Source: Octopus bimaculoides (taxonomy: Eukaryota). From it: a DNA stretch of 64,000 nucleotides. The notes under the pieces were generated by a model that was not told the origin of the DNA, did not search any database, and saw only the letters and a program-made list of their open reading frames with translations. Positions 7,918 to 32,604 of the stretch are shown here, one piece after another (the stretch's first letter is position 1; every line of letters begins with the position of its first letter). The stretch spans positions 64,474,687 through 64,538,686 of the forward strand of contig NC_068990.1 in the NCBI RefSeq assembly GCF_001194135.2, written 5' to 3'. The translations under genes and the position numbers were made by a program.

Positions 7918-8087
7918 TGAAGTGCAGAAAGCAGTTCACACTGCACAGGGTTTATACATGAGATGGTGTGAGCTGCAGGAAGATCTTGGCTCCATTACAA
8001 AGGAGGAACTCGATTGGACAACCAATGAACTGCGCAACAGCCTTCGTAGTATTGAATGGGACCTTGAAGACCTAGAAGAAACGATAG
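7918..8087 (+). CDS. STX6: Syntaxin-6 coding exon 2 (Habc / Syntaxin-6_N region)
   Basis: Acceptor ttgtcattgcAG ends at 7917. Translates (x)[56 protein letters not shown], matching the remembered STX6 N-terminus (EVQKAV..AQGL..RW..L.....[25 protein letters not shown]). 170 nt, phase 2 to phase 1, followed by the U12 donor ATATCCTTT. Confidence 0.96.
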
Positions 8088-8897
8088 ATATCCTTTGTCT
8101 GTAACTGATTTTGCAATCATTCTATCAGTATATAACACACACACATATGGTACTGAACATTTCATTTCTTTATTCTTTCAGCCTTTGTGTCATCTTTCTT
8201 ATGTAATACTTCCTACAGCTAGACCCATAATTTAATTGTATGTTTATATAGCCACATAATAAAAATGCACTTGTATACACAACTCTTTGCACATATTTGT
8301 CCAACAAAAAACCTTGCAAACTCACTTACTGTAGCACTGGAACTCTCTCTGACCTACATTCTATTAACTTTGCGTTATTTCCTCAATTTTCTCCCGCTTC
8401 CTATCTGATCTCTAGCCAACCATACTTTTTTTCTTATAAGCAGGATATGGCAACATAACTACCATCAACAGAACAGAAAAAGAAAAAAAAAAAACAGTCA
8501 CTACACTTATTAAGGAAACCAGTTTGCAAACTTACACTCTCCTAACTCAAGCACCACACAGCTGAAAGCCTCAAACTTGCAATAGAATAGAGACCTCACT
8601 TTTTTTCAAATGTTAGATCTCCTCATCAAGGCTGGAAATTACTTTATCTTTGAACAGCTAATATACTTTACAAAGTACATTTGTGACCTGTCTAAGATTA
8701 TTGCATATAGACCAGGGAAATTGATACACATTCACAGATATGACTCAGATCTCCTAAATAAGGAACTTATAAAGTTTATCAACAAGCCTTCACCCATTAT
8801 TACACTGTTGTGCTCCCTCTACTTTCTGTCCCTTTCAATGACTAGCAAGCTGTATGCCTCTCCCATCCAAGTTTACCTAATATATATATATATATAT

Positions 8898-9933
8898 TAG
8901 AAAGCACCTGCCCCTACTGATGACAAAGGGCCTCTCTCTCAGAGTGAAAGGTAGCTTGTATGATGCATGTGTGTGAACTGCCATGCTACATGGCAGTGAA
9001 ACATGGTCCTTGACTGCTGAAGACATGTGTAGGCTTGAAATAAATTAAGGTAGTATGATCTGCTGGATGTGTAATGTCAGTGTGCGCACACAGCAGAGTG
9101 TATGTGCCCTGAGAAAAATGCAGGACAAAAGAAGCATCAGATTTGGTGTGCAAGATAGACGATTGCGCTGGTATGGTCATGTGCTGCGTATGGATGAGGA
9201 GAGCTTTGAAGAAGTGGAAGGACCCATGAAAAAGGGAGACACAGGAAAATATAGGATGAGATGCTGAAGCATGATGATTGAACAATGGGCCTCACGGAGG
9301 CAATGACGAAAGACCAAGACCTCTGGAGATATGCTGTGATTGAGAAGACCTAGCAAGTAAAGGGAGATCACAGCTGTAGCCTACACCAGTGTCGCATAGC
9401 CAGCCCATTTAAAAAGTACCTTTGAATCATCGGGCGACATTCTGAGCTTCAGGAAATGTATTGAGTCAAGTAAAATCAAAATCAAATCACAATCAAATGG
9501 AAATTAAATTTGTGGCCGATGCAAGTACCACCTGGCTGGCTCCCATGCTGTTGGCACGCGATAAGCACCATTCATGCGTGGGTCATTACCAGTGCCGCAT
9601 GACTGGCTCCCCATGCTGGTGGTACTTAAAAATCACCATCCAAATGTGGTCTATGCCAGCCCCCACTCCGCTCCAATTGGCTCCTGTGCCAGTAGCACGT
9701 AAAAAAGCACCATCCAAACGTTGCCGATGCCAGTGCCGCCTGACTGCCTCCCATGCCAGTGGAATGTAAAAAGCCCCCACTACACTCTTGTAGTGGTTGG
9801 CCTTAGGAAGGGCATCCAGCTGTAGAAACATTCCCAGATCAGATTAGAGCCTGGTGCAGCCTCCTGGCTTGTCAGTCCCCAGTCAAACCGTCCGACCCAT
9901 GCCAGCATGGAAAACGGATGTTGAAAAATGATG

Positions 9934-9935
<2 letters not shown>
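8898..9935 (+). mobile_element. 5'-truncated RTE-clade LINE (C-terminal ORF remnant, 3' tail and (GAT)n)
   Basis: Degenerate LPLLMTKGLSLRVKGSLYDACV..MLHGSETW...CWMCNVSV...RRLRWYGHVLRMDE, typical of the RTE post-RT region. Ends ccatgccagcatggaaaacggatgtt...atgatgat. Confidence 0.85.
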
Positions 9936-9973
<38 letters not shown>

Positions 9974-10006
9974 TATACATATATATATTTGATATATATA
10001 TATATA

Positions 10007-10777
10007 NNNNNNNNNNNNNNNNNNNNNNNNNNNNNNNNNNNNNNNNNNNNNNNNNNNNNNNNNNNNNNNNNNNNNNNNNNNNNNNNNNNNNNNNNNNNNN
10101 NNNNNNNNNNNNNNNNNNNNNNNNNNNNNNNNNNNNNNNNNNNNNNNNNNNNNNNNNNNNNNNNNNNNNNNNNNNNNNNNNNNNNNNNNNNNNNNNNNNN
10201 NNNNNNNNNNNNNNNNNNNNNNNNNNNNNNNNNNNNNNNNNNNNNNNNNNNNNNNNNNNNNNNNNNNNNNNNNNNNNNNNNNNNNNNNNNNNNNNNNNNN
10301 NNNNNNNNNNNNNNNNNNNNNNNNNNNNNNNNNNNNNNNNNNNNNNNNNNNNNNNNNNNNNNNNNNNNNNNNNNNNNNNNNNNNNNNNNNNNNNNNNNNN
10401 NNNNNNNNNNNNNNNNNNNNNNNNNNNNNNNNNNNNNNNNNNNNNNNNNNNNNNNNNNNNNNNNNNNNNNNNNNNNNNNNNNNNNNNNNNNNNNNNNNNN
10501 NNNNNNNNNNNNNNNNNNNNNNNNNNNNNNNNNNNNNNNNNNNNNNNNNNNNNNNNNNNNNNNNNNNNNNNNNNNNNNNNNNNNNNNNNNNNNNNNNNNN
10601 NNNNNNNNNNNNNNNNNNNNNNNNNNNNNNNNNNNNNNNNNNNNNNNNNNNNNNNNNNNNNNNNNNNNNNNNNNNNNNNNNNNNNNNNNNNNNNNNNNNN
10701 NNNNNNNNNNNNNNNNNNNNNNNNNNNNNNNNNNNNNNNNNNNNNNNNNNNNNNNNNNNNNNNNNNNNNNNNNNNNN
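10007..10777. other. Assembly gap (N run)
   Basis: Flanked by (TA)n. The other gaps are 4781-4790, 11412-11626, 12845-12900, 15725-16673, 26488-26594 and 40710-40719. Most abut (TA)n or homopolymers. Confidence 0.99.
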
Positions 10778-10778
10778 T

Positions 10779-10820
<42 letters not shown>

Positions 10821-11337
10821 ATATATATTATATATATAAGCAAGGCGTAGTTATATAATATTTTCCGATACAAGCTATGTTTCCTGATTTGTCTCATAGT
10901 CTATATGGCACACAATTTCTCAGCAAAATTTACGCACTCACACACACACCTACTTTTAGCAACCATAGATTAGAAGAGATTATTTTTAATCCTTTGGTGA
11001 AGGTTAATCTGAAAATCTGAATCCTGAAAGATTAAATATGTGTGCTATAGAAAACCTTGTGAACTTTCTTGACAAATAGAAGGCATTTTTTATTTTAGTA
11101 ATTTCGTTATTGTTGGGTATTCTCTGGTTAGAACTGATGTCTTTGAGACATCTTTTGAAACCAATTCCATCGATCAGTGTTATCATAACCATCTTCCTTT
11201 CTTGTGTTTTGTCTCTTTTTGTGGTTTAGTTCACTAGGGATTAATTATGTTACACTTAATGATGTTATGTCATATTTATAGTGATTATCTTGCTGTTCTT
11301 ATCTGCTCATTCTTTGATCCTCATCAGAATATATATA

Positions 11338-11389
<52 letters not shown>

Positions 11390-11829
11390 AACTGGTTGAA
11401 ATTTTGCAGTCNNNNNNNNNNNNNNNNNNNNNNNNNNNNNNNNNNNNNNNNNNNNNNNNNNNNNNNNNNNNNNNNNNNNNNNNNNNNNNNNNNNNNNNNN
11501 NNNNNNNNNNNNNNNNNNNNNNNNNNNNNNNNNNNNNNNNNNNNNNNNNNNNNNNNNNNNNNNNNNNNNNNNNNNNNNNNNNNNNNNNNNNNNNNNNNNN
11601 NNNNNNNNNNNNNNNNNNNNNNNNNNATATATATATATATAAATCAAATAAGTGACAAATATGTCATGGTATTAATGCCTTGACATCCTTGTTACTTATT
11701 TGATTTTTATTCACCTTACTTCGAGCTGTGTGGATAATACCAGATTGACTTGGTTCCTCAACTTAAGTACCTTATTCAACTGAATCTTAATCATTTCTTT
11801 ATATATATACGCATACAGAAACACACACA

Positions 11830-12830
11830 CAGGATGCGATGGGTAAATTGTCGCCACTTTATATCTTTAATTTCGTGCATGCACATAGTTTGTTTTTGAT
11901 GGGTACCATCTGTGAGAAAAAAAAGCACCATGACGCAATTCACCCTGCCAGAAATTTGGAAATGACATGCTGTACTACTTGGCATTTGCACCGGAAGCTC
12001 CAATACAAACATTTCAGAGTGCTTTGGGTATCAATCTGAGAACAGTGCAGAGAAGTTAAGAAGATTTGGATGAGTCTAATGGTAATTACGAAGGTACAGC
12101 AGCTCGGAAAACTCACTCTGATCATTCTGATAAGAAAAGAACTGAATTTTTTGGTGAGATCCAGGCCACGATTGACAATGATCCCTCAAAATCAATCAGG
12201 TTCATCACCAGGGACATAAGTGCGTCTGAGTTTCTTATCAGACAGGTAGTGCATGAAGACATTCGGTATTCCTCAAGCAAGATGCCAATTTTCTTCCCAA
12301 GCCATTAAGGACAAGAGGAAAGACCACACTACAAAGGTTTTGAACAAACTCAAGCATCTCCTCCAACTAAACATGCTTTGGTTTTTCTCAGATGAGAGAA
12401 ATTTCTGCCAGAATCAGATGGTGAATATGCAGAACAACCGTTGGCTTGTCGTGTCCCCAAAACATGTACCGCGAGTGATAAAAATCAAACATCCAGTCAA
12501 CATCATGGTGTTTGGAGTGATCACTAGGGAGGGCAATGTTATGCCTCCCTTCATTGTCCCACATGGCCTCACACTTAACACAGTGGCCTACATCAAGTGC
12601 CTGGAGGAGGTAGTCCTTAAGCAAGGAGACCATTCAGAAGAGCTGCAGGAGATTGCGAAGTCATCTGGAGGCCGTGGTTGAAGCCAATGGCGATTTTATT
12701 GAACAAATTTATGCTTTAGTATTTCAATATATTTTTCATGTCATTTTGGTAAATATATCTGTTAAAATGACATGTCAGTGTTATTTTCATTTTTGCATAA
12801 TTTAGACAACAATTTCTTCACCACACCCTA
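11830..12830 (+). mobile_element. Internally deleted Tc1/mariner-superfamily element (maT/DD37D-like transposase remnant)
   Basis: Degenerate TIRs caggatgcgatgggtaaattgtcgcc and gacaacaatttcttcaccacacccta. Frameshifted transposase with WFFSDERNFCQNQMVNMQNNRWL...KHPVNIMVFGVITREGNVMPPF...AYIKCLEEVVL. The C-terminal catalytic half is missing, so the subfamily is inferred. Confidence 0.75.
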
Positions 12831-13519
12831 TATATGTATATATANNNNNNNNNNNNNNNNNNNNNNNNNNNNNNNNNNNNNNNNNNNNNNNNNNNNNNNN
12901 TATATATATATATATATATATCATTGACAGCATTTAATGTCCCTTTTCCATGCTGGTATGGGTTGGGAAGTTTAACAGGAACTGGCCACACCAGGTTCCA
13001 TAGTCTGTTTGGTTTGGTTTCTACAGTTGCATGCTCTTCCTAATGCTAACCACTTTACAGAGAGTAGTGGATGCTTTTTATGTGGTACCATCACCAGTGA
13101 CACACACACACACATAGATATATAAAGTATGGGCATTGCAACTGAGAATGACTTGGTGGGCTTTCATTAATTGCATTAGGGGAACAGGTAGTCACAACCA
13201 GACACAGACATCCCCTTGGCTCTCCTACTTTTGACTCAGCAAATAAAGAGAGCACTGCACTAGTCTAGGCTGATACTTTATTGATCTCAAAAAAGGATTA
13301 AATACAAAGTTGGTCTTGGCAGGATTTGAAAATCAAGTGCTATTAGCTGGTGCAAATATTGCAATGCTCCAATTTCTCCACCAGTCAATCACACACACAT
13401 ACATATACACACGTCATGAGAGAAGACCTAAGCTTTGGCACCCAGTCACAGAAGATGGAAAAAACTGGTTTACAACATAACTGCATCCCTCTAACTCCAT
13501 CAAGAGTCAACAAAGAAGG

Positions 13520-13963
13520 GAATGCATGGCTGTCTGGTAAGAAGCTTGCTTCCTAACCACATGGTGCTGGGTTCAGTCCCAATGTTTGGCACCTTGGGCA
13601 AGTGTCTTCTACTATAACCTCAGGCCAACAAAAGCCTTGTAAGTGGATTTGGTAGATGGAAACTGAAAGATGCCCATTGTATATATGTGTGTGTTTGTGT
13701 GTATCTGTGTGTGTGTGTCTTTGTGTGTATCTGTATGTGTTTATTATATTGTGTCTGTGTTGTCCCTCATCATCGCTTGATGACCAGTGTTCGTTTGTTT
13801 ACATCCCCGTAATGTAGTAGTTTGGCAGAAAGACCCAATGAGTAAGTACTAGACTTAAAAGTAAGTCCTGGAGTGGAATTATCTGACAAAAAACACTTCA
13901 AGGCGATGCTCCAGCATGGTCACAATGAAATGACTGAAACAAGTAAAAGAAAAGAGTAAAAGA
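13520..13963 (+). mobile_element. tRNA-derived SINE (ccttgggcaagtgtcttctactata core family)
   Basis: Head tggctgtctggtaagaagcttgc...gggttcagtccc with A/B-box-like motifs, internal (TG)n, and tail ctccagcatgg...tgactgaaacaagtaaaaga. Homologous copies at about 21205-21597 (+), 33275-33430 (+), 42893-43015 (-), 47818-47970 (-) and 55985-56345 (+). Confidence 0.75.
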
Positions 13964-13967
13964 ATAT

Positions 13968-15549
13968 AAGAATAGAGTGGAGTAAGTTCAAAGAGCGATT
14001 ACCTCTGGTGGCAACAAAAGGATTCTCTCTCAGAGTGAAAGGTAGACTGTATGATGCTTGTGTGTGAACAGCTATATTCCATGGTAGTAAGACATGGGCT
14101 CTGAATGTAGAAGACATGCATAGGCTGGAGAGAAATGAAGGCAGTATGCTCTGTTGGATGTGCAACATCAGTGTACATGTACAACAAAGTGCAAATGTAT
14201 TGAAAGAAAAGTTGGGCATAAGAGGAATCAAATGTGGCATAGATGAGAGAAGACTATGTTGGTTTGGACATGGGATGCATATGAATGAGGACATCTGCAT
14301 AAAGAAGTTCTGATCACTGAAAGTGGATGGTACTCGCAGAAGAGGGAGTCCCAGAAGACATGGGATGAAGTGGTAAGGACCAATCTCAGGATGGTGGGTC
14401 TCACAGAGGAAATGACAATGGACCGAGATATCTAATGATATGAGGTTCTTGAGAAGATCCACCCATGTCAGCGAAACTGAGTTCTAGAAGCACTGTGTAT
14501 TCCTTCCATATGTAACAAGAAAGCTTTTCACACACCCTACTCCAACAAACCAAACTATATCTCTACAACTCTTCTCTTTTTCACATTTCTTCTTTCATGG
14601 ACTATGCTTACCTCCCCAATCCTGTTGTCTTGGCTTTGTTTCACTGTATTATTGCTCTCTGATAGCCCCCAACCTGTGTGTTCCATCCATCCGTAACAAG
14701 AAAACTTTTCACAAACCCTACCCCAACAAACCAAACTACATCACTGCATCTTCACATTTCTTCCTTCATGCACTATGCTTACCTCTCACTCCTCAGTCCT
14801 GTCCTCATAACCCTGTTTCTCTGTATCATTACTATCTGGTAGCCCCCCCCCCTCCACTTTATATACCCAGGTTTTCACCACTCCCTGCACTCCCTTCCCC
14901 GCTCTCTAATCATGCTTCAAACCTCAAGAGTATGCCCTGACACTTGCCACCATCTATATCTCTCTCTTCCTTTACTATCCCATGTGTATATTCGATTATC
15001 CCATGTGTATGCTGATTCCCATCCCTTGTGAGTACACCCGGCACTTTGCCTCAGTCTCTATCCTGCTGTCTCTTACTCTTTCTTTCCTACTGCTATTTCC
15101 TCAGGTTGGGTATCCATGTATCTCCTTTATGGCAGCATACCTGTTTCTGTCCTCATTCCTGATATCCCTCTCTCTTACCTTCTACCTCTCCTACAATAGC
15201 CTCTCTCTGTTTTACTATAACCTTTCATCATCTGACACAAGATCACTTCTTTCAGTGTCTCCCTCTCCTCTCAAAAGGTTTTTTATCTTGCAAGTTACTT
15301 GGTGACCCTGTCAGTGCAGGTGCCACTTAAAATGCATCCAGTCCACACTGTAAAGTGGATGACATTTGAAAGGGCATCCAACTGTAAAAACCTTGCCAAA
15401 ACTGACCTCGGCTGTGTTTGTGCCATGTAATAAGCACTCAGTCCGCTCTGTTGGGTGGTTGGTGTTAGGAAGGGCATCCAGCTGTAAAAATCCTATCATC
15501 CCACCCATACCAACATGGAAGGCGGACGTTAAACAATGATGATGATGAT
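13968..15549 (+). mobile_element. 5'-truncated RTE LINE with long pyrimidine-rich 3' UTR and (GAT)n tail
   Basis: WSKFKERLPLVATKGFSLRVKGRLYDACV...GSMLCWMCNISV...RRLCWFGHGMHMNED remnant. Internal duplication of about 180 bp (about 14500-14680 and 14680-14850). Tail ends aaacaatgatgatgatgat. Confidence 0.85.
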
Positions 15550-17696
15550 ATATATATATATATATATATATGTATAAGCAACTTATGGAATCTAATGAAG
15601 TACCATGTAATTGTTTATCTTTGACAATTCTGTATGTTGCCTATTATTTGAAGTGGTTAGCCAAATCTGGATTATTTCAGAGTGCTAATAAGGCATCTGC
15701 CTGGACTCCAAATCCCCAGCTCTTNNNNNNNNNNNNNNNNNNNNNNNNNNNNNNNNNNNNNNNNNNNNNNNNNNNNNNNNNNNNNNNNNNNNNNNNNNNN
15801 NNNNNNNNNNNNNNNNNNNNNNNNNNNNNNNNNNNNNNNNNNNNNNNNNNNNNNNNNNNNNNNNNNNNNNNNNNNNNNNNNNNNNNNNNNNNNNNNNNNN
15901 NNNNNNNNNNNNNNNNNNNNNNNNNNNNNNNNNNNNNNNNNNNNNNNNNNNNNNNNNNNNNNNNNNNNNNNNNNNNNNNNNNNNNNNNNNNNNNNNNNNN
16001 NNNNNNNNNNNNNNNNNNNNNNNNNNNNNNNNNNNNNNNNNNNNNNNNNNNNNNNNNNNNNNNNNNNNNNNNNNNNNNNNNNNNNNNNNNNNNNNNNNNN
16101 NNNNNNNNNNNNNNNNNNNNNNNNNNNNNNNNNNNNNNNNNNNNNNNNNNNNNNNNNNNNNNNNNNNNNNNNNNNNNNNNNNNNNNNNNNNNNNNNNNNN
16201 NNNNNNNNNNNNNNNNNNNNNNNNNNNNNNNNNNNNNNNNNNNNNNNNNNNNNNNNNNNNNNNNNNNNNNNNNNNNNNNNNNNNNNNNNNNNNNNNNNNN
16301 NNNNNNNNNNNNNNNNNNNNNNNNNNNNNNNNNNNNNNNNNNNNNNNNNNNNNNNNNNNNNNNNNNNNNNNNNNNNNNNNNNNNNNNNNNNNNNNNNNNN
16401 NNNNNNNNNNNNNNNNNNNNNNNNNNNNNNNNNNNNNNNNNNNNNNNNNNNNNNNNNNNNNNNNNNNNNNNNNNNNNNNNNNNNNNNNNNNNNNNNNNNN
16501 NNNNNNNNNNNNNNNNNNNNNNNNNNNNNNNNNNNNNNNNNNNNNNNNNNNNNNNNNNNNNNNNNNNNNNNNNNNNNNNNNNNNNNNNNNNNNNNNNNNN
16601 NNNNNNNNNNNNNNNNNNNNNNNNNNNNNNNNNNNNNNNNNNNNNNNNNNNNNNNNNNNNNNNNNNNNNNNNNTTTTTTTTTTTTTTTTTTTTTTATTTA
16701 TTTGAAAAATGATTGGTAGAGTGAGTCACTGGTAAACTTTCATTGGCATTGTAGCTGTTTTAATGTAGTTTCTTAAGCCGGAAGTTTAATATTACTACCA
16801 AATCCCTACGGAATCAATGCAATGTCCCTTGACTTTCAAGCAATCAGACTCTTTAATTCTTTTTGGCATTAGACAACTCTGTATTAGAGATTCTATTAAG
16901 GACATAGTGTTTTTAAATGTTGTTGTTACTGGTGTTGCTGTTGTTGTTATTGTAGTTGTTGTTCGTTGTAATGCAATTCATGCTGGTGTTGGTGGAAGTG
17001 GTAAGACAGTTACTGTTAATGGTGGTGGTTGTGATAATACAGTACTGCGGTTGGTGGTGGTTGCAGTAAAATAGTTTTGTTGAGGTGATGGTTGTGGTGG
17101 TATACTACAGTATTGTTGAGGTGTTGGTACATTACTGTTGATGATGGTGGTAGTGCAGCAACTATTGATGGTGGTAGCAGAGGTGCAGCAGCTGTTGCTG
17201 CTGGTGATGCTGCTTTTGTTATTACTCTTGTTGCCTCGTTTTTTTTTCTTTTCTCTTATATAATTTTTGGTTTTTTTTTCTCTTTTCTAATTTCCTTCTA
17301 TTTATTTCCCTCTAAATCATTTCTTTATTTCCTTCAAATCATTTCTTTCTTTATTTCTCTCTATTCTTTTTTTCATACCTCTTTGCCCTCCATTTTCTCA
17401 GATTCCCATTATTTTTTTCATCCATTTATTCTATATTTTATAATTTGAAATTGACTCAATCTTTTCTTTACTTGCTGTAATTTTTACTGTTTTAACTTAG
17501 GTTTCATTTGCATATCTTGGCACATCTCATGCATTTGATGCACACTGCACCAGGCTTTGTGACATGAAGTGCATATTTACAGCAGTTGAATACAGTGATG
17601 CGTTTCAATCACTGAAGGTCTGTGTGACATTTCATAGAAGCAGTTTGAAGATTGTGTAACATGTAATGTACATGTTATATAACTGAATACATATAT

Positions 17697-20135
17697 ATCA
17701 TCATCATCATCATCATTATTTAACATCCATCTTCCATGCAAACTTGGGTAGAACAGTTCACAGAAGCTGATCGGGAGGGAAAACTACTCTATGCTACTGT
17801 GTCTATTTTGGCAGGGTTTTTACAGCTGGATGCCCTTCCAAATACCAACTACTTTACAGTGGGGAGTGGATGCTTTTTATGTGGCACCATCACCAAGTAA
17901 CTCGCAAGACAAGGAATTATGAGAGGAGCAGGGGCATTTGAGGAGGGGAACTTGTGTCAGATGATGAAAAGTTATTGGGTGACAAAGAGATAGAGAGGCA
18001 GAAACAGGTGTCTTGTTATAACGGAGGTGGCATTGGAGGAGGTGATCCAGTATCAAATGATGAAAGGTTAAAGTGTGACAGAGATAGGAAGGCAGAAATA
18101 GGTGTCTTGCTATAGAGGAGGTACATGGTTATCAAGTGAGAGAGAGCAACCAAGAATGAAAGTAGAAATAGGTGTGCTGCTGTAAAGGAGATACATGGCT
18201 ACCCAGTCAGAGGGGAGAGCAAGGCAAAGAGAGAGAGAGAGAGAGAGTAGGAAACAGCAAAAGTGTAAGAGAGAGCAGGAGAGTGGTGGTGAAGTGCCAG
18301 GATATACTCACATGTAGCAAATATTAGAGCATAGATGTGATGGTACAATAAAGAAAAGCAAGATACGAAGGTCGTAATATACACGGTCAAGTGTTGCCAA
18401 GAAGGTGCAAATAGGGTGTGGGGATTGCAGTGACTGACAAAAACCTGGGTCAAGGGCAGGAAAGGGGATTGGAAGACAGTCATAGTTTATGAAGAGGAAA
18501 TGTGAGAAAGATGCTGTTTAGAAGAGAAGATGTAATTTGGTTTCTTGAAGTAGGTGTGTGAAAAGTTTGTTGTTACATGTGGGTGGGACACAACTCTTCT
18601 AGCACTCAGTTTTGCTGACATGGGTGGGTCTTTTCTAGAACCTCATATCATCAAACATCTCGGTCCATTGTCATTTCCTTTGTGAGCTCCAGCATTTTGA
18701 TCAGTCCTCACCACTTCATTCCATGTCTTCCTGGATCTCCCCCTTCTACAGGTACCATCCACTTTCAGTGATCGGCACTTCTTTATACAGCTGTCTTCAC
18801 ACATACGCATCACATGTCCAAACCAACGCATGCTCTTCTCCTGCATGCCACCTTGAATCCCTCTTACACCTGATTTTTCTCTCAACACAGTTGAGCTTTG
18901 TTAGTTTTGCACACTGCTGTTGCAAATCCAACGGAGCATACTACCTTCATTCCTCTCCAGTCTGTGCATGTCCTCTGCAGTCCTAGCCCATATCTCACTT
19001 CCATGTAATATAGCTGTTCTCACACAGGCATCATACAATCTGCCTTTCACTCTGCAATAAAGTCCTCTTATGTCCAACAGAGGTAGTAGCTATTTGAACT
19101 TCTTCCACCCTATTCCTATTCTTGAAACAATACTTTCAGAGCATCCACCACCTTTATTAATTTGGTCACCTAGATAGCAGAAACTTACTGCTACCTCAAG
19201 AGAGCCTCTTGGGCATTCGAGAAAGTTTAAGTCCCTCATGCCGTTAGTACTTATTGTTTAAGTGTATCTGCCACACATTGAAAGCGGCCCTATCTGTTAA
19301 CCTACTTATGATTCCACTGCATCTCTTATGCATCCATAGCTTACACTTGGTGCAGCAAATGGAATTGCATCCCTCTCCTTTCCTACATATTGAGCAGGGC
19401 CATTTACCTGATGGAAGGAGGGTTTTATTTGTTTTCTTGCTAACAACTTTAGTCTTTAAATTAACTTTAAGGCCCTTTGATTTCAGGTTTTGTTTCCAAA
19501 CCCTGAACTTCTCTTCCAATTCTGCTTCAGATTCTTCAATAAGAGCAAGATCATCAGCATATAGTAGTTCCCATGGGCATTGAGTTTTGAATTCCTCTGT
19601 TATGGCCTGGAGAAGTATGATGAATAAGAGTAGACTAAGAACTGATCCCTGATGAACCCCAACTTGTACACTAAATTCATCACTGTATTCAAAGCCGACT
19701 CTCACCTTACTGACAGCATCATTGTACATGGCTTGAATGGCTCTAACAAGCTACTGCTCTATTCCTAGCTTCCTTAGAGACCACCAGATTAGAGAGTGGA
19801 GAACCCTGTCAAAAGCTTTCTCCAAGTTAATGAAAGCTAAGTACAATGGTTTACTTTTGGCCAAATACTTTTTTTGCAGTTGTCTCACTATGAAGATGGC
19901 ATCTGTGGTACTTCTTCCTGAAACAATAACCAAACTGCATCTCATGTAGCTTAATTCTACCCCTAATCAGTTGAGATATAATTCTCTCTGTAATTTTCAT
20001 GACTGGCTTGATACCTTTGTAGTTACCTCTGTAACAGCTTGATACCTATATAGTTATTTCTATCTAAAGCATCACCTTTGCCCTTGTAGCAGCTAACTAT
20101 AATACTACACAGATGCTGTGTGATACATGTTTACT
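17697..20135 (-). mobile_element. Decayed RTE LINE covering most of the RT domain, PHD-like finger, 3' UTR and tail
   Basis: Minus-strand remnants IVSCYKGKGDALDRNNY, GRSTTDAIFIVRQLQKKY..PLYLAFINLEKAFDRV, GVHQGSVLSLLLF, LLYADDLALI and LRWFGHVMRM-like segments. (ATC)n at 17697-17716 is the reverse-complement tail. Confidence 0.9.
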
Positions 20136-20232
20136 GCATAAAGGCTATGTTATGTAATGTATATGCTACATAAGGATTCTGATATGTAATGTATACACTG
20201 TGTAAGGTCCGTGGGATCTAATGTATACACTA

Positions 20233-20359
20233 CAGGGTGTCCTCAAAGTCTGGGTACGTGGAGTAAATAAAATCATGACATAAACAATTAAATATAAGAA
20301 ATAATAATTTCTTAAAGTATGTGTTAATCTCCATGTACCCAGACTTTGTGGACACCCTG
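20233..20359. mobile_element. 127-bp Tc1/mariner-type MITE
   Basis: 31-bp TIRs CAGGGTGTCCTCAAAGTCTGGGTACGTGGAG, with 2 mismatches to the reverse complement of the right end. Flanked by TA on both sides (20231-20232, 20360-20361). Confidence 0.9.
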
Positions 20360-23238: not shown

Positions 23239-23273
<35 letters not shown>

Positions 23274-25001
23274 ACTCATTCACTTTTGCACTGAAGTAAA
23301 CTACTGATTTCTTTCTAATGTGCATTACCAAAAACAATATACAGACTACTTAAAAGGTTATCAACCAGTTGTATGGTTTGGTTAGAAAGATTATGACAAA
23401 AGGCCACATTGTAACAAATGCAAATGGCATCTAATTTTCAGCACTTTGACTTGGAATCCCTGAAAAGTATCATCCATAATTAGGAGCATTTATTACACAC
23501 ACACACACAACAATGTGTCTCACTTATACTCTCACATAGACTTGTAAAAATGCTAGTAGAGTTTATGTAAGAATATATCAGGTTTTATGACTAATTTCAG
23601 ACTTCCTATATAGTAGGTATGTCAAATCCATCGCTAAAAATTCAGTCAAACTAAAAATAGGTTGGCTTCTCTTAGGCTATTTACAAATGTCTGCTAACAG
23701 ACAGCACTATTTAAAGTGTTGTTTTGAATATTTTTCTTCATTTTCATTTTTTTTTTTCACTCATGAAGCTTGCTGCAGCTAAATACTTCTGACACAGTTT
23801 GTTTACTAAAGAAGACATAGAATGTCTACAACTGATGTGAAATTACAAATTTTTGGAGATTCTGATGAAGCTCAACAAAAATATGTTCAAATGTTTCTAA
23901 AGAATGACTTGAAGTCAATTGGTGGAGAAAAATTTCAAGAGGAAAGTAATATATGTGTGTCTCAAATGAAGGAGTATGCTTCTCGATCAGCTAATGATAA
24001 TGGTGATACAGTTATTATGTGGTAGTTTACCAGATCTATATCATATTCTCAATTTTTGGGTGTTTCTGTTCAGTAGATTTAGTCACTATGTTTCTTTTTC
24101 AGATGTTTGTTTTCATCTGTTCCCTATGTGAATGAAGTTCAGATTTGATAACATTCCCACAAGAAACAAGTTTTTAGTTTGGTAGTATAAAATGGAGCTG
24201 AAGAATATTTTTGAGGTGTTTTGAACTGACACTTGGTTATCAAAGACTTTCATTTGCCAGAGGTTATTAGGGGAGGAGAAAAATGTGGAAATGTGGTAGT
24301 TGGTCAGAGACAGGTGTGGAGAGTAATATTGTGGAGGTAGATTCGCAGCCTCGTTTGTACAGTTTCTGGAGAGTTATCTGTCAGCCATGGTCAGATATCG
24401 TCATGGAAAAAAATTGATCTGTCTCGATTTAATAATGCTGGATGTAAATATTGCTTTCTTTGTGCATTTTATTGGTTTCCTGGTATTGTTTTTGCTGTGA
24501 TGGTTTTTGTCAGAGTTCAAGAAATGCTAAACAATGATTGCACATGCAAACCACCAAACAGTAACCATAGACTTTATTTGATGGAACATCAGACTGGAAA
24601 AGTGTTTTGGTACTTCACCTCAGTCCATTTATTGCATGAAATACCATTGATTGTTGCACAGAATCTATTTTTCACTACATGTCACATTGTAACATGTTAT
24701 TGTTATTCAAAAGAAGTGCAGACGAAATAGTTGCAGTTTTCTCCTCCCCATTTGTTGAATGGCAATGTTGAGTTGCTTTACATGAGTCTTCAGTAGTGGC
24801 CTTCAGTTGGCTGTTTATAACTGCAGCTGGTTGCCTGTGACATTCCTCATCACCAAGGTTCTTATCTCCATTACATAATTTTAGGAACCTATGTTAAACT
24901 GTTTGTGATGGCCCCCTTGGCTAAATGTTTGACTAGTACTGTGAGCAGTTTCTACTACTTGGCATTCCATTTTGAATTTATGTACAATAGAATTGCTTGA
25001 A

Positions 25002-25007
<6 letters not shown>

Positions 25008-25057
<50 letters not shown>
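25008..25057. repeat. Poly-T tract (50 nt)
   Basis: Directly visible. Confidence 0.95.
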
Positions 25058-25059
<2 letters not shown>

Positions 25060-27539
25060 ATTTTTAATTTCAACAGCTTAAAATATACCAGAGGAAACAG
25101 ATAATGCAAAACCATTAGAATAGAATAAAATAGGCACTTCAAAATAATATATTACTTGAACATAGGCAAATAAAAATTTATTCTAAAATAAGCATCAATG
25201 TTTAACAAAAAGCACAATTATTTTTACACCAACTTTATGACAATGTATGTATATATTTGTGTGTGTGTGTGTGTGTGTGTGCACATGTACATACATGCGT
25301 GCGTCATTGGTTGAATTGTAAGGAAGTTTCCATAATTGGACAGCATCACTTCATTGCACAGAGAGGCTGTTGGCACTGTGAGCTCGCAAAGAGGGAGAAA
25401 ATTTTAACAGAAGCCCTGGATGTTTAGATGAGTCGTGATTTTTCTTAGAAACAATGTTTAAGCCTTGTATGATAATTATACTTTAAACAGTTTTTTTAAA
25501 TGTCTTTCTTGGTGTTATGTCACTGAGCAGGAAAAGTGACTGCTGTGGCAAGGTCCAATATAATTTTATTACAGAAGTTCTTATCTTCTTTAGTAAGGTC
25601 CATAAAACAATTACCATAAGATGTACTGGCCCTTGCAGCACCTACGATGAGGCATATACTGATGGAAAGCTATAAGAAAATATAGATAAGAAACTACTGT
25701 ACAAAATCTGCTTTTGGTTAATCAAAATAATCTGCAATTTCTTTTCAAAGCATAAGATATGAGTTTGTAAAACCATTCCATGAAAGAGGATACTGAGCTA
25801 CGAAAGGTTGAGAGCTGCTGTGCTATACCATAGGGAAGTTGATGTAGATTTGCAGTGAGCCAAAAGGGGGAGGTTGCTTTGCAGCTTGACCTACTACAAA
25901 TAACAATCCAACATCCCTCAAATCATACCATACTGCCCAGAGAACAAAAAATAGACTCATTGAATAATGTGAATATTTTTTCGTATTTGAAAATATGTTG
26001 TATTTGAAAATAAGATGCAATGGTCACATTTTGACCAGCTTTTGGTCAAAATGGTCAGAGGAGGCCTGTGGTTTAATGTGCTAAAGCATACTGAGATATT
26101 AATGAGGGTTGTGATGGAAAAGAATTAATGTTCTAACATCTGGTCAGTAACCACATTATATAGCCTCAGGGTTAAAAAAAAAGAAGAAATTTGTATGTGT
26201 GTGTGTGTATATATTGTATATGTGTTTGTAGGACATTGTTTGCTTATATGTACATATGTGTTTCTTAATAATCTCTACATTCTCATGCGTTATTAATGCA
26301 CTAACAGTGAGAAGCAACTAGGTGTAAAAAAAAAAATGTACTATTTGCTTGATAATATTGATGTAATGTCTTTTTGTCTTTTTGTCTTCTTTTTACAAAG
26401 CTCCACACACATACATACTTAGGTAACCACAAAGTCTTATATTTATAGTGAGGGAAATAAAAAGTTGTAAAGCTGCCCCCCCCCCCCNNNNNNNNNNNNN
26501 NNNNNNNNNNNNNNNNNNNNNNNNNNNNNNNNNNNNNNNNNNNNNNNNNNNNNNNNNNNNNNNNNNNNNNNNNNNNNNNNNNNNNNNNNNNNNNCCCCCC
26601 CATACACACACACACACACACACACATACAAATTCACTTGTACTATGTACTGTAATGTCAAAAAACATTGAAGGTTCACTATAACATATAGCAAATGATG
26701 AATTAATTCTGCATCTGAAAACTTATTTACTCATGCTGTAACAAAATTTAGGAATTACTAGTGTGTATAGAACAATTGAAAGAATACGATTTTTAGTTCA
26801 GTTTTTCAAGTTTTTTTTTTCTTGTATTTCGTTGATGTTTTTGTTGCTGTTAAGCTCATAACATTGTAATTGTCTGAGATAGAAGAAGCCAAAGACTGAC
26901 AGTTGTTTACAAGTTGCAACAAGAGGACATGATTCTCAGCCTTTGTTGACCAGAAAGAAATACTGAATACATTTTCATATAATATCTAGTAAACTTTGAG
27001 AAATGTTTTCCACTGGGTGCATTATTTCATTTTGCTGTGTTTTTCTTTTTCTACTTCATGGAATTTGGAAATGTGTGTCATATGAACTTTGGTTTCTTCT
27101 AGTAACACACACAGAATCAATCATTTAAAAATGTGCCTTATTCCTCCAGATAAATTAATAGTTCTGGTGGAAAGCAACAAAAGTTAAGAAGACTCTGTAG
27201 TAAGAGAGAGAGTAGATGGGGCTGAATGGTTTTTTCAGTGAAGACTAGTTTGTGTATTAAGTGGTAACAAATAATTATGTAAATAGGGAGTAAAAGATGT
27301 AGAACTTGATATGCAGCAGTGTTTTATACAACTAGGTATAAAATCACAGTTTGTATCATTATCTCTGTGCCAACAGACAACTTTGAGGTAAAATTTACAC
27401 ATCCGTGTGTGTTTTTTCTTTCTTCTATTTCTGGTTTCTTCATTATTAGAGGTCTTTCTTGTCCTGGTGTTTGTTTTTATTTTTATTTTGAAGTTTTCTT
27501 TAGTTGTTCTTGGGTGTTTCGCTTTTGTTTTTCTTTCTT

Positions 27540-28826
27540 CTTGTCAGTTGAAAAGTACATAGGCTGTCCAAGACATTCATGGAATGTGACCAAATGAGGT
27601 TTAGTTTTCAGCATAGCCCCCCCCCCCTCTGCAGTTCACACACTTCTTACATCAGTGTTGCAGTGCTTGGATCCCATTGGTGAAGAAGCTTTCATCTTGT
27701 TGGTCAAAAAAGTCATCATCAGCATATATGACATCATTATCATTGCAATATTGCTTCTCAACCAAGTTTTTTTTTTTTTCATGTTGTAGAACAGATGATA
27801 GTCAGGTGGGACCAAATCATGAGAATAGGGAGGTTAAGCAACCAGTTCAAAGCCACAGTCACACACACCAGTCATTGAAACCAAAAGCTTCTGTGCTGGA
27901 TCATTGTCCTCATGAAACAAGACCCCTTTCATCAGTTTTCCTGGGCACTTGGTCTTAATAGCCTTTGTAAGTGCCTCAGCAAGTTGGCATAGTACTCTCC
28001 ATTGATGGTGTGGCCCTTTTGAAAATAGTCAATAAACACAAAGCCTTTTACATTCCAGAAAACTGAGGCTGTCACCTTCCCTGCAGATGAAACAACCCTG
28101 GCCTTCTTTGGAGCAGGTGAAGAGGGGTGTTTCTACTGCATTGATTGTCTCTTTGTCTTTGCATCTGGCTCAAAGTGATGAATCCAACACACATCCTAGG
28201 TTAGGAAGCCAGCTATATCTGCCTCAGACAATGTCAGATTCTGTTGTGATGTGAGCAGCCTTGTGCACTTTTGATCAGCTGTCAGACAACATGACACCCA
28301 CCAAGCAAAAGAAACCTTCATCATGCCAAAATTGCTGTGCAGAATATTCTTAACTTTCTCACAGGTTATGCTAATAGTATTGGCTATTTGATTAATAGTC
28401 TGTCAGCCATCATATGGTGAACATGGTCAGTGGTTTCCTCAGCGGTGACAGTTGCATGACATCCTGACCTTGGGTCATCTTCAAGAGTCTCCCTTCCCCT
28501 CCTAAATTCAATTGCCCACTTTTACATTGTTGATAAAGTTGGAACATCATCCCCTAATGTAGCAACCATGTTAGCATGAATGTCCTAGGGGCTAAACCTT
28601 TTTACTGCAGGTATTCAAGAACATGACATTCGCAAATTTTGTCCATTTTCAAGAGAAATTGCTACTAGTTACTTTTGAAGTGTTCTTTGAGCAGTTAGAT
28701 GACAATTTATTTCAAAAGGAACAATGCAGTTATTAACAAGAAGAGCTGAAATTAATGCATGCAAGATTTCACAGCTCTAGCATTACTACTTCATAGTCGG
28801 TCTATGAACTTTTCAGCACACCCTCG
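27540..28826 (-). mobile_element. Decayed mariner element, near full length
   Basis: Minus-strand ATG at 28646 (MDK..). Remnants LEDDPRSG, KKARVVSSAGKVTASVFWNVKGFVFIDYFQKGHTINGEYYANLLRHL and DFFDQQDESFFTNGIQALQH. TIR cgagggtgtgctgaaaagttc at the 28826 end and a degenerate copy near 27540-27570. Confidence 0.85.
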
Positions 28827-31308
28827 TGTGTGTTTGTGTGTGTGTGTGCATGCATGAGTGCAGTGTAGGTGCATACCACATCCCCATGCTTTCTCGCGTA
28901 CCCTAGCCCCACACCCTGAGCCTCACCTGTATTTTGTTCCATCATTTGCTTCAAATGCCTCTATCTTCACCCACCCAATCCAAACCTCTGTATTACCTCG
29001 CTTATCCTCACCCCCCACCCACCCCAAGAACATATCCTGACACATCTTCACCACCATCTCTCTCACTATTGCTCTCTCTAACTTACTCTCTGACTCACTT
29101 GCTCTCTTTATATTACTCTCTAACTCACCCTCTTTTCCTCTTCAATTGGAGTATTCACATATCTACTCTACAGCAAGACACTTATTCCTGCCCCTCTATA
29201 CTTTTAATCTCTCATCAACTAGCACAAAGCCACCGCCCCATCAATACTCCTGTCCACTCCCAACTGAGGGAGTTTTTGTCCTACAAGTTATTTGGCGAGC
29301 CTATTGGTGTTGGTGCCATGTAATAAGTACTGGTGCTGGTGTCACATAAAAAGCACCCAGTACATTCTGTAAAGAGATTGGTGTTAGAAAGGAATTCCAG
29401 TCATAGAAAATATGCCAAAACAGACTATAGAGCCCAGTGCAGATGACAGCCTTACCAGCTCCTGCCAAACTTTCCAACCCATGTCAGCATGGACACAGAC
29501 ATGAATTGATGATGATGTCTTTAGATTATTGAGGCTCAATGAGTTGAAAGAAAATTATTTGTAAAATATGTAAAACTTGCTTTTTAGAGTGATCATCCAA
29601 AGGAAGAGGACAAGACTCTTTTTGATACACAAAGTAAAGTTACCATTGTCAGTCAGGATTGCACTGTAAGAAGAGATTCTATGCAGTTGGTGAGACAGTA
29701 GACTATTGGGGTTTTTATTGGTAACAAGATTCTTTGTTGAATATTGACGGATAACCAAGCTATCCAAGGTGGAGATTACCATTAGACAAGGATTATATCC
29801 ATGATTTGAGGCCCATGAAACAGCATGTAACATGGTTTTAGAACGAACTCTATCAAAATTGTTTATTTTTATTTGAATTTAGGGTTATTTGGTATTATCT
29901 AGGTATCATATAGGCTGTGTTTTTAAACCTAAACATGGTGTGTATGTGTATACACATGCATATGTATGTGTGTGTAGAGAGAGAGAGGGTAGTTTTTAGA
30001 TCTAAATATAGTGAAAGTTGTGGTCAGTATTGAAATGTAGTGAATAAATGTTTACTCATGCTGTAAATTTACAAATAAGAATAGCACATGTAGTGCAGTG
30101 AATTTTGATGTAAATCATACAAACATACAATCTCTCTTTCTCTCTCAAAATACTTTGGAAGTACTATAGGCTGTGAACTGTATAATATTGACTTGTTCTG
30201 TTTGTAAGGTTTTTGCTAAACCATCTGTATAAGGTTTGTAATGTGCCTTGATACAATTACTATCTAAATAAACTTTGGGAATATCATTTTTGGCAACTTG
30301 ATATTTTGTATCTCTTTTGTCCTTCCCTTTCTTGTTTGTATGGCAGTGTTGATGTTTGCCATTGAATAGTGCTTTCAGTTTGAAGAAATCTATGTTGTTA
30401 TCGCAAACAATTGCATCAGAGAGACTATATTCAAAGTCTCTCTCAAGTGTGGGTGTATATTTGTATCATTGTGTGAATGATTGTGCAATGTTATTCCTTA
30501 ATGACAGTTTATTGTTGATTGTTGTGGTAGTTGTTTCCAAGAATAATCCTCGTGGGTGTGCTGCTTGTTATTACTAAATTTAGTGATAGGCAGCAGTTGT
30601 GGAAAATTGCTTTCAACAAAGGTTTATCTGTAAATATCATAGAATCAGCATCACACTAGAAATGGTCCTATAATATTAGATCACAATAGCTTTTTCACAT
30701 ATATAATCCTTTACTAGATAATTCGATCTGTTCTATCTTTGCCTATAATTTTCTGACTGACTACATTGAAATGATTGTCTGCTTCAAAAGTATGCAATAT
30801 ATTGTATGAAACCCAACGTTTCTTCAATTATACATCTCAAATTCAATTGGTTGTTTTACAAGACATTGAAAATAAACTAAGAAAATAAAATAAAAAAAGA
30901 TTTTTATTATATATGCCAGCATCTGTGTATAAATACATACATTAATTTATATATATATATACACACACATATATATAGGATATACTTTTTGTAATGAGAT
31001 AAAAAACCAAGGCCGTGTATAATATAGAACATTTATAAATCGAATGTCTTACAGCTGTTTCCAGGATATTTATTATATCCCTTCATTGGAGACGGTGTGA
31101 GAGGATGATTAAACAATAGTTAGTTTAGTTAAGATAGGAAATATTGAGTGAATGTAGGGATATTGTATTTGTAAATCCATTGTTTAGGTAGAATGGTATA
31201 CATATAAGATTCCAATACCTTGTGAGTAAAATCCAATAGTCTTTAAGATTGGTCATTGCATTTGTAAATATATACACACACACACACATATATATGTATA
31301 TATACACA

Positions 31309-32148
31309 AAGAGGTATCCAAAAGTAACTAGAAACATTCTCTGTGGGACAAGCCCATTGTAGTTTGCACTTCCACTGCTAGAAGCCCCTTTATGCAACCC
31401 TCAGGCTTCAGTCTGCCGACCAGTGGCATCGGGTGAAGTCATACTGCTACGTGGTGCATCATCGTTTTGCAGTGCTTCTTCCCAGTTCATCAATTTTCGA
31501 GACAGCTGAAATGAAGGAACAGCGTGCTTCTGTGGAATTCTGTTTTCTGCTGGAGAAAATGGAGACCGAAATAGTTGTCAGGCTTCAAACAGATTACAAG
31601 GACACTGCCATGAACGAAACACAAATTTGTGAGTGGTTTTCACTTGTTGCTTGAAGACCAACCATGTTCAGGGTCACCAGTGACCTCCTGAATGAATGAA
31701 AACATCATGAAAATTCATGAACTGATCTTGGAGGACTGAACAATTAACAAACTTGTTGATATGATTGGTGTGTCCTGGAGCTCCTGCCAATGAATTTTGA
31801 GTGAGGAATTGTGAATGAAAATAGTTGCAGCAAAATTTGTGCCTTGCTTGTTCATAGAAGATCAAAATCAGTCACGATTGAATGCACTTTCGAAGATCAT
31901 CACTGGTGATGAAAGCTGGTGCTATGGAATTTGCAGATGTGGAAGAGGTGAAGGAAAAAAACGATGGTGGCATTAAAAGGCATCACTTCTCAAAATCTTG
32001 AGCACTGCTTCAAACAGTGGAAAATGCATCTGGGCCGAAGCATTGCTTCAAATAGAGAATACTTTGAAGGCAATAAAAATGTAAACATGTAAAACTAAGT
32101 GAATAAAATAACATTGCAAAATACCAGTTTCTTTCGGGTACCCTCTCT
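31309..32148 (+). mobile_element. Internally deleted mariner element (irritans/Hsmar2-like)
   Basis: MKEQRASVEFCFLLEKMETEIVVRLQTDYKDTAMNETQICEWFS, KFVP and IITGDESWCYG, joined directly to the C-terminal FADVEEVKEKT..LKGIT..CFKQWK. Degenerate TIRs gaggtatccaaaagtaact and ccagtttctttcgggtaccctc. Confidence 0.8.
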
Positions 32149-32509
32149 TATATATATTCACACACACACACTGCTTCCTTTTTCAGCTGTCCACTTATGT
32201 TTGTTGGTATTTCAGAGCTTCCATTAGTTCCCTCTGTTAGGTCATCTGCCTAATTGTCAGTCTGTCTGTCCTTCTGGCCATTACTTGCTTCATCAGTATG
32301 CTAGTTAATCTGTCTGAACATCTGTCTGTTTGCCTATCTATCTTCAGTTCATCTACTTGTCTATCTTCAGTCCATCTGTCCATTTGCCTGTTTATTCATT
32401 AAACCATTATTTCTCCTCCACTTATATCACTTGTTTGTCTGATAGCATCTCTTTTCCTCCTAATGCACATCTACTGTTCAATTTGTTATTTACTTTAACC
32501 TATCTCCAA

Positions 32510-32604
32510 GTATTGTGGAGAAGAATCCAAAAAAATTCAAAATCACTGATGAGGAATTGCGAGAGAGAAGAGGCTTCATAGAGAAGACGAAGCAGGTGGT
32601 GAGG
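32510..32604 (+). CDS. STX6: Syntaxin-6 coding exon 3
   Basis: 95 nt. Completes G|GT then IVEKNPKKFKITDEELRERRGFIEKTKQVVR (compare STX6 IVEANPRKF...EL..RK.FI..TRQVVR). Donor GTAAGT at 32605. The exact 5' boundary depends on the AT-AA interpretation; the alternative start is 32511. Confidence 0.93.

Follow-up and report, generated by a model that had tools for sequence, protein, structure and literature searches.

The syntaxin-6 locus of Octopus bimaculoides raises the question of whether a major-class (U2-type) GT-AG pair that overlaps a minor-class (U12-type) intron is a functional splicing alternative or a coincidence. The window analysed is a 64,000 nt stretch of contig NC_068990.1 (positions 64,474,687–64,538,686, forward strand), and all coordinates below refer to it. 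The initial annotation had placed the overlapping pair at 8101 and 32510, described it as twintron-like, and read it as a real regulated isoform, as a conversion from U12 to U2 splicing in progress, or as a trap for gene predictors restricted to GT-AG introns. Re-reading of the sequence reproduced its coordinates, its junctions and the in-frame replacement of Gly by DILCL (+4 aa) to the base. The features concerned are as follows.

7918–8087, + strand: coding exon 2 of syntaxin-6 (…EVQKAV… plus the first base of a Gly codon), matched at 100 % by Octopus syntaxin-6 (P0001) in tblastn and covered by the alignment of mRNA contig L001
8088–8096, + strand: U12-type 5′ splice site box ATATCCTTT, AT subtype, a perfect 9/9 match to consensus
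8088–8100, + strand: the 13 nt gained by exon 2 under the alternative, AT ATC CTT TGT CT, reading D-I-L-C-L
8088–32509, + strand: U12-type AT-AA intron of syntaxin-6, nominal length 24,422 nt, with five assembly gaps and transposon debris
8101–8106, + strand: candidate U2-type donor GTAACT in the context TCT/GTAACT, with no G at −1 and no G at +5
32493–32499, + strand: U12 branch-site motif CTTTAAC (consensus CCTTAAC), branch A at ~32498, 11 nt from the intron end
32508–32509, + strand: U12 3′ terminal dinucleotide AA, demanded by the mRNA/protein junction ATAG/GTATT (ETIGIVEK)
32509–32510, + strand: AG of the alternative, cc-AAG/T, with A at −3 and ending 1 nt outside the U12 intron
32510–32604, + strand: coding exon 3 of syntaxin-6 (GT plus IVEKNPKKFKITDEELRERRGFIEKTKQVVR), with donor AGG/GTAAGT, placed by tblastn and by the alignment of L001

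Exon 2 directly follows the acceptor cattgcag/ and ends in ...GAA ACG ATA G at 8087. The adjoining ATATCCTTT matches the donor of the U12 AT-AN subtype, /ATATCCTT, and ACTTTAAC at 32492–32499 resembles the branch-site consensus TCCTTAAC within the ~10–15 nt expected before the 3′ splice site. The intron 3′ end reads ...ACTTTAACCTATCTCCAA at 32509, with the G at 32510 being the first base of exon 3. The termini are thus AT-AA rather than AT-AC, a point that the initial annotation had left implicit, and joining 8087^32510 gives ETIGIVEK. Two other 3′ ends were considered for the ATATCC donor and rejected: the AC at 32498–32499 breaks the frame, and the AG at 32509–32510 shifts it by −1. A ‘DPFMVV’ stretch at 7007–7027, considered as a copy of exon 1, was likewise rejected as a chance occurrence, since at the nucleotide level it is not similar to the true exon 1 in the mRNA contig.

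The alternative GT at 8101–8102 lies 13 nt downstream of the U12 donor. Joining 8100^32511 replaces the G of ETIGIVEK with DILCL, a gain of 12 nt that stays in frame and introduces no stop, and, apart from 8101/32510, no in-frame GT-AG pair free of stops lies within ±40 nt of the two intron ends. The candidate donor GTAACT itself overlaps an in-frame TAA at 8102–8104, which closes the frame of a retained intron (ETIDILCL*). The description ‘twintron-like’ is imprecise: the GT falls within the U12 intron, 13 nt in, but the AG extends 1 nt past its end. The two introns are therefore staggered (interlocked), and neither is nested in the other.

Five runs of N occur in the window (10007–10777, 11412–11626, 12845–12900, 15725–16673 and 26488–26594; 2,098 N in total). 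All are deep inside the U12 intron, with 1.9 kb separating the donor and 5.9 kb the acceptor from the closest run, and all are bordered by TA-rich simple repeats. The mRNA contig is collinear with the window, running from exon 2 straight into exon 3 and then through exons 4–8; no exon is therefore hidden in the gaps, which leave only the length of the intron uncertain and do not affect junction or frame. The syntaxin-6 gene spans 150–165 kb in the octopods O. sinensis, O. bimaculoides, O. vulgaris and Argonauta hians.

The U12 intron of syntaxin-6 is real, ancient and already published. Intron 1 of Drosophila Syx6 (CG7736) and intron 2 of human STX6 are listed as U12 AT-AC introns (Lin et al. 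2010, PMC2831892), and the octopus intron shares with them gene, codon position, phase, the ATATCCTT donor and a CCTTAAC-like branch site near the 3′ end. It differs in ending in AA rather than AC, as do those of Aplysia and zebrafish, and in being ~24 kb long and filled with repeats. Orthologous U12-type introns at the same position were found in Aplysia (AT-AA), oyster (AT-AC), zebrafish (AT-AA) and marmoset (AT-AC), with the same donor box, the same codon phase and branch motifs (CCTTAAC, CCTTGAC, CTTTGAC) 8–12 nt before the 3′ end. Among STX6/STX10 fragments, 111/120 carry NIL, DIL, YIL, SIL or NIF tails after EET[IV], that is, the translation of an ATATCC-like donor (GTATCC for SIL). The search that supplied this survey of the donor box across animals, made with the read-through open reading frame of exon 2, returned no cephalopod genomic fragments among its matches. 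AT-AA is a recognized, if rare, U12 terminus, and the octopus intron shares its AT/AA ends and U12 branch site with the AT-AA subclass of A-type AT-AN minor introns (Sheth et al. 2006, PMC1557818; de Wolf et al. 2021, PMC8280824), a likeness in sequence signals.

The arrangement AA/GT at the intron end is common to Aplysia, zebrafish and octopus. Since Aplysia and zebrafish have AA/G together with the U12 junction, the arrangement is old and stable rather than transitional. The GT-AG pair does not follow the same pattern: no equivalent is present in the Aplysia and oyster loci, while the zebrafish and marmoset orthologues hold in-frame, stop-free GT-AG pairs of their own that are unrelated to that of octopus. 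O. vulgaris presumably shares the alternative U2 sites, as suggested by its protein model CAI9729035.1 (P0124).

At the transcript level, the mRNA contig, which derives from a related octopus, reads GACGATAG/GTATTGTT (ATAG/GTATT), without the 13 nt insert. ETIGIVEK is likewise present in the NCBI models of O. bimaculoides (X1–X3), O. sinensis and Argonauta hians (XP_014784935.1, XP_029640847.1 and GAB1603061.1 among the deposited proteins); all decapodiform-like transcript proteins carry ETI[G/S]IVEK, and human STX10 in PDB 4DND reads ETIGIVE. A search for the peptide of the alternative junction retrieved one deposited model containing DILCL, O. vulgaris CAI9729035.1, and no other protein. The C-terminus of this model is also aberrant, half of the transmembrane anchor being replaced by unrelated residues that are encoded nowhere in the window. 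No transcript-derived sequence with the 8100^32511 junction was found; because the protein collection covers octopus sparsely, with one transcript-derived protein and neither genomic nor retained-intron fragments, this absence is weak evidence.

The proximity of the GT-AG pair to the U12 intron most likely does not exceed chance expectation. For intron sequence sampled from this window, with the AG at +1 taken as given, an in-frame GT without a stop arises within 13 nt with a probability of 0.12 and within 40 nt with one of 0.41, and for any GT-AG pair of that kind within ±40 nt the probability is 0.74. The alternative donor scores −3.6 on an approximate weight matrix, placing it at the 66th percentile of all 3,714 GTs on the + strand of the window; 517 of the 1,419 GTs in the same intron score at least as high. 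Its U1 duplex of −1.3 kcal/mol is at the 25th percentile of GTs in the window. All five real U2 donors of syntaxin-6 rank above it, at or above the 80th percentile by weight matrix and the 87th by U1 duplex. Two of these genuine donors are nonetheless weak by weight matrix (−1.9 and −1.6), indicating that a weak donor can be functional in octopus. The alternative acceptor combines a good pyrimidine tract (0.79) with an A at −3, where 6/6 real acceptors have C or T.

Taken together, the GT-AG pair beside the ancient U12 AT-AA intron at 8088–32509 is probably fortuitous, a weak pair with a demonstrated consequence that is computational only (probability about 0.8). Judging from the splice signals, the minor spliceosome would act on this intron: U11 and U6atac would recognize ATATCCTTT at 8088, U12 would pair with CTTTAAC at 32493–32499, and the 3′ site (AA at 32508–32509) would be picked by its distance from the branch point, joining 8087 to 32510 to give ETIGIVEK. 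In normal mRNA neither the 8101 GT nor the AG at 32509–32510 would see appreciable use. Gene builders limited to GT-AG, GC-AG and AT-AC introns cannot represent an AT-AA intron and would for that reason fall back on the 8101/32510 pair, which may be how the +4 aa model of O. vulgaris arose.

The predictor trap foreseen by the initial annotation has been realized, CAI9729035.1 using the GT-AG substitute where the transcript-guided models XP_014784935.1, XP_029640847.1 and GAB1603061.1 use the true junction. For the O. vulgaris annotation, EVM was used to merge PASA, Spaln, Augustus and GeneMark, so that evidence and ab initio predictions were combined (PMC10700109). The pipeline also drew on RNA-seq and Iso-Seq, with PASA updates (PMC10700109), so CAI9729035.1 may have a transcript origin.

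Such an origin bears on the strongest of the alternatives, in which the major spliceosome uses GT 8101/AG 32510 cryptically at a low level, as noise or when the minor spliceosome is limiting, and produces a rare +4 aa mRNA without selected function; the O. vulgaris model could stem from a transcript of this kind. AT-AN introns are reported to splice inefficiently and to be liable to retention or to use of cryptic U2 sites (PMC1557818; PMC8280824; inefficient splicing also in PMC8329584), the acceptor region is pyrimidine-rich, 32509–32510 is the first AG to follow the branch region, and an in-frame product would escape nonsense-mediated decay. However, the donor offers just four contiguous base pairs to U1 and lacks G at both −1 and +5, a perfect U11 site 13 nt away would be expected to cover the region, and the acceptor carries its A at −3. 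None of the Gnomon-built O. bimaculoides isoforms (0/3) contains the insert, nor did any transcript-derived sequence with the junction turn up, and low-level cryptic use is accordingly regarded as unlikely.

A regulated, functional isoform, by which octopods would lengthen helix b of the N-terminal three-helix domain by one turn through U2/U12 competition of the prospero or SRSF10 type, is very doubtful. Introns that compete for U2 and U12 splicing, whether nested or interlocked, form an established class (PMC8329584), the octopus pair keeps the frame and is the sole such pair near the intron ends, and the same coding insert appears possible in O. vulgaris. AlphaFold2 lengthens helix b by one turn with high confidence, so that the DILCL insert is predicted to be not obviously destabilizing, but structure prediction did not discriminate between the two forms. 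Against this, the four residues would sit between the invariant T67 and I70, in the block that is best conserved across 40 metazoan STX6 proteins, none of which has an indel there. ‘DIL’ is a mere translation of the U12 donor box, and the residues beyond it are not conserved across animals. The arrangement is at chance level with a donor of random-GT quality, the mRNA contig and all NCBI octopod models read ETIGIVEK, and STX6 is absent from the text of a paper on conserved vertebrate twintrons; the isoform proposed by the initial annotation thus found no support. It is equally improbable that 8101/32510 is a genuine target of the major spliceosome in particular tissues or at low minor-spliceosome activity, with the DILCL isoform as the output of an ‘interlocked’ U2/U12 switch.

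Conversion from U12 to U2 splicing in the octopod lineage, for which a shift to nearby GT-AG sites is one proposed route (reviewed in PMC8329584) and for which the AA terminus supplies an AG 1 nt downstream, is the least credible reading, since the U12 signals are undecayed (9/9 donor, optimal branch distance, a donor box kept in >100 STX6/STX10 fragments across animals), AA/G also occurs in Aplysia and zebrafish with use of the U12 junction, the mRNA contig uses that junction too, and such conversion is reported mainly for the GT-AG subtype and not AT-AC (PMC2831892).

The comparison with known competing introns (prospero twintron, SRSF10 module, interlocked introns; Akinyi & Frilander 2021, PMC8329584) extends to a U2-type GT just inside a U12 AT-type intron and an in-frame product. 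In prospero, however, the U2 intron sits wholly within the U12 intron, the two isoforms have both been observed and their choice is under the control of an enhancer, whereas in octopus the introns are staggered, with the AG 1 nt outside, the donor is no better than a random GT and no known transcript has the alternative junction. The reading as an ancient U12 intron with a fortuitous GT-AG neighbour makes the locus a textbook instance, differing in no respect, of the mis-annotation of U12 introns by predictors confined to canonical sites (U12DB, PMC1635337): the U12 intron is replaced, in the deposited O. vulgaris protein, by the nearest frame-preserving GT-AG pair.

New splicing biology would follow only if RNA data were to show the alternative junction in use, and naive junction counts would be biased in the same direction as the gene models, given that aligners penalize AT-AA junctions and favour GT-AG. 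The value of the finding is mainly practical: an AT-AA minor intron leads canonical-only pipelines to place four spurious residues in the best-conserved block of syntaxin-6, and the O. vulgaris protein that carries this error has entered GenBank and UniProt.

The window carries syntaxin-6 exons 2 to 8, exon 1 lying outside it, and the protein they encode is 100% identical to XP_014784935.1 and XP_029640847.1 of O. bimaculoides and O. sinensis (P0001). The gene is 150–165 kb long in four octopod assemblies. A stretch at 7007-7027, translated DPFMVV(R) and followed by GT, resembles the exon-1 peptide DPFFVVR; it was judged a chance likeness, with neither nucleotide similarity to the real exon 1 nor an in-frame start codon.

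Syntaxin-6 exons in the window
7918-8087, + strand, exon 2
32510-32604, + strand, exon 3
38975-39037, + strand, exon 4
44314-44433, + strand, exon 5
46748-46854, + strand, exon 6
48610-48704, + strand, exon 7
52763-stop, + strand, exon 8

Read directly, exon 2 ends in GAA ACG ATA G (last base 8087) and the intron opens with ATATCCTTT (8088-8096), behind which GTCT and GTAACT come in turn, so that a GT stands at 8101-8102. The intron closes with ...ACTTTAACCTATCTCCAA at 32509 and exon 3 begins with GTATTGTGGAG at 32510, which places an AG at 32509-32510. The termini are thus AT-AA. Of the two candidate junctions, 8087^32510 (...GAAACGATAG/GTATTGTGG) yields ETIGIVEK and 8100^32511 (...GATATCCTTTGTCT/TATTGTGG) a product longer by 12 nt. 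When every GT and AG up to ±40 nt around the two ends is listed, this GT-AG pair is the sole one that is in frame and stop-free, and the coordinates and arithmetic of the initial annotation hold. Its description of the arrangement as ‘twintron-like’ is inaccurate, since neither candidate intron is nested in the other; they are staggered. Intron retention in octopus would lead to an immediate stop (8088-8104; ETIDILCL, then TAA at 8102-8104), the stop codon overlapping the candidate donor (CT/GTAA).

The U12 intron of syntaxin-6 is genuine and ancient, and has been described before. Its donor is a perfect U12 AT-type box, the branch motif, CTTTAAC, is placed 11 nt before the 3′ end, and the same intron is present in the same codon phase in four further species.

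Orthologous introns (slashes mark intron borders)
Aplysia, G/ATATCCTTT...TTCTTTGACtgtttgcAA/GT
Oyster, G/ATATCCTTT...GCCTTAACttcctcAC/GA
Zebrafish, A/ATATCCTTT...GCCTTAACcttgtgtttAA/GT
Marmoset, A/ATATCCTTT...ACCTTGACtttttgacctAC/GC

Drosophila Syx6 intron 1 (AT-AC) and human STX6 intron 2 have been listed as orthologous U12 introns (Lin et al. 2010; PMC2831892), and AT-AA is a rare but recognised U12 terminus (PMC1557818; PMC8280824). The exon-2 read-through ORF, used as query, matched 120 short STX6/STX10 fragments of a wide range of animals, in which EET(I/V) is followed by NIL (54), DIL (43), YIL (5), NIF (5) or SIL (4). These tails match the translation of N/ATATCCTT, SIL pointing to A/GTATCCTT and NIF to a variant box, for example N/ATATTT; no conservation beyond the read-through tripeptide was found among the 120 fragments.

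Several further observations concern this intron in other lineages. The SIL fragments (P0146, P0164, P0168, P0246) suggest a GT-subtype U12 donor (A/GTATCC) and the NIF fragments (P0178, P0192, P0212, P0215, P0241) a degenerate box (ATATTT), while P0172 (VPA) and P0210 (AQV, Tachypleus) lack a U12 box altogether; those lineages may have undergone subtype switches or conversions. A Logan transcript, P0205, retains an entire short U12 intron in frame (…ETINILLSKKPP…GESIVESNP…), and the UniRef STX10 fragments P0147, P0150, P0155 and P0157 read through the intron; ‘DILG…’ tails derived from the intron close several mammalian STX10 entries. A-type minor introns tend to be retained, and these entries fit that tendency. 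In Patella caerulea (GCA_036850965.1, locus L003, 501-1262) syntaxin-6 (P0006) is an uninterrupted 762-nt ORF that has lost the intron; it looks like an intronless retrocopy, or is possibly cDNA contamination. The 3′ end reads AA/GT in octopus, Aplysia and zebrafish (window 32508-32511; loci L002, 7455-7459, and L005, 3250-3254), AC/GA in oyster and AC/GC in marmoset. Wherever it is AA/G, an AG is present 1 nt downstream, and its use by the U12 spliceosome as AT-AG, the commoner non-canonical terminus, would shift the frame by -1. In the mRNA, AA is chosen over the downstream AG.

The junction in use is seen in L001, a 1,884-nt octopus transcript contig from run SRR3401912, described as an octopus metatranscriptome (PMC11662614). 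It is collinear with exons 2, 3, 4, 5, 6, 7 and 8 and reads GACGATAG/GTATTGTT, which is the U12 junction and lacks the 13-nt insert; its alignment to the window contains no additional exon sequence between exons 2 and 3. ETIGIVEK is likewise found in all three O. bimaculoides isoforms, the O. sinensis models and an Argonauta hians model, ETISIVEK in six decapodiform-like transcript proteins (about 150 contigs combined) and ETIGIVE in human STX10 (PDB 4DND). Octopus coverage of the protein collection is sparse, so absence of the alternative junction there is only weak evidence. The junction falls within the most invariant block of 40 metazoan STX6 proteins (R55 S56 I57 W59 D60 E62 D63 L64 E66 T67 / I70 V71 E72 N74 P75 K77 F78), whose alignment has no indels in this block. 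In the AlphaFold2 prediction helix b covers residues 40-73, with G69 close to its C-terminus; in the DILCL form the helix is predicted with confidence to be one turn longer (residues 40-77), so that the predicted structures do not tell the two forms apart.

The N runs number five (2,098 N altogether) and are confined to the intron, coming no nearer than 1.9 kb to the donor and 5.9 kb to the acceptor. They leave intron length uncertain; junction and frame are unaffected. Gap borders (9870-10900, 11280-11660, 15570-16720) are TA-rich or poly-T simple repeats (YIYIYI… or FFFFF in translation), consistent with gaps due to low-complexity sequence, not mis-joins. The intron also contains a degenerate retroelement fragment (19247-19729, - strand; Pfam RVT_1, E = 1.3e-10) with a weak PHD-finger match just under the gathering cut-off, adjoined by a reverse-transcriptase-like stretch (19766-19903) with no Pfam match.

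The GT-AG pair is no more than expected by chance. With random intron sequence of the window set behind ATATCCTT and the AG at +1 given, a GT that keeps the frame and meets no stop turns up with a probability of 0.12 in the first 13 nt, 0.25 in 22 nt and 0.41 in 40 nt. For any in-frame, stop-free GT-AG pair within ±40 nt the figure is 0.74. Zebrafish has its own in-frame pair (TTA/GTCGTC at +16, with the same AAG) and marmoset three with exonic AG; none lies near the orthologous intron ends in Aplysia or oyster.

Low-level cryptic use of the pair by the major spliceosome, such as is known to occur beside A-type minor introns (PMC8329584; PMC8280824), is unlikely. On an approximate metazoan weight matrix, the donor TCT/GTAACT scores -3.6, which ranks it at the 66th percentile among the 3,714 GTs on the + strand, and pairs with the U1 5′ end at -1.3 kcal/mol (25th percentile); 517 of 1,419 GTs in the same intron score at least as high. 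Each of the gene's five genuine U2 donors reaches at least the 80th (matrix) and 87th (U1 pairing) percentiles. The pyrimidine tract of the alternative acceptor is good (0.79), but its -3 position is A, where all six genuine acceptors have C or T. A regulated isoform, as had been proposed, is very improbable: it found no positive support, the pair is at chance level and L001 uses the U12 junction. The suggested U12-to-U2 conversion in progress, equally without positive support, is more improbable still.

Among the proteins found exactly one contains DILCL, the 266-aa O. vulgaris model CAI9729035.1 (P0124), in line with the trap for GT-AG-only predictors that the initial annotation had suggested. 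Querying specifically with the alternative-junction peptide brought up no others. That annotation merged PASA transcript assemblies, Spaln protein alignments, Augustus and GeneMark-ES in EVidenceModeler (PMC10700109). The second half of the P0124 transmembrane anchor is replaced by unrelated residues not encoded in the window, and this aberrant C-terminus is a second sign of the model's unreliability. It departs from the last exon after …VLIVIM(V), from about 52807 onward, and continues as CSGVELHYPISYYHCYVE, absent from window coding, truncating the anchor; a GT at about 52807 (ATG/GTGATT) may have been used. PASA is known to validate GT/GC-AG and AT-AC introns only, and transcript alignments spanning AT-AA were therefore probably discarded and an ab initio GT-AG solution picked instead. 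Overall, the best-supported account, with a probability of about 0.8, is of an ancient, already described U12 AT-AA intron beside which a weak, frame-preserving GT-AG pair lies by chance, its sole demonstrated effect being a mis-annotated protein.
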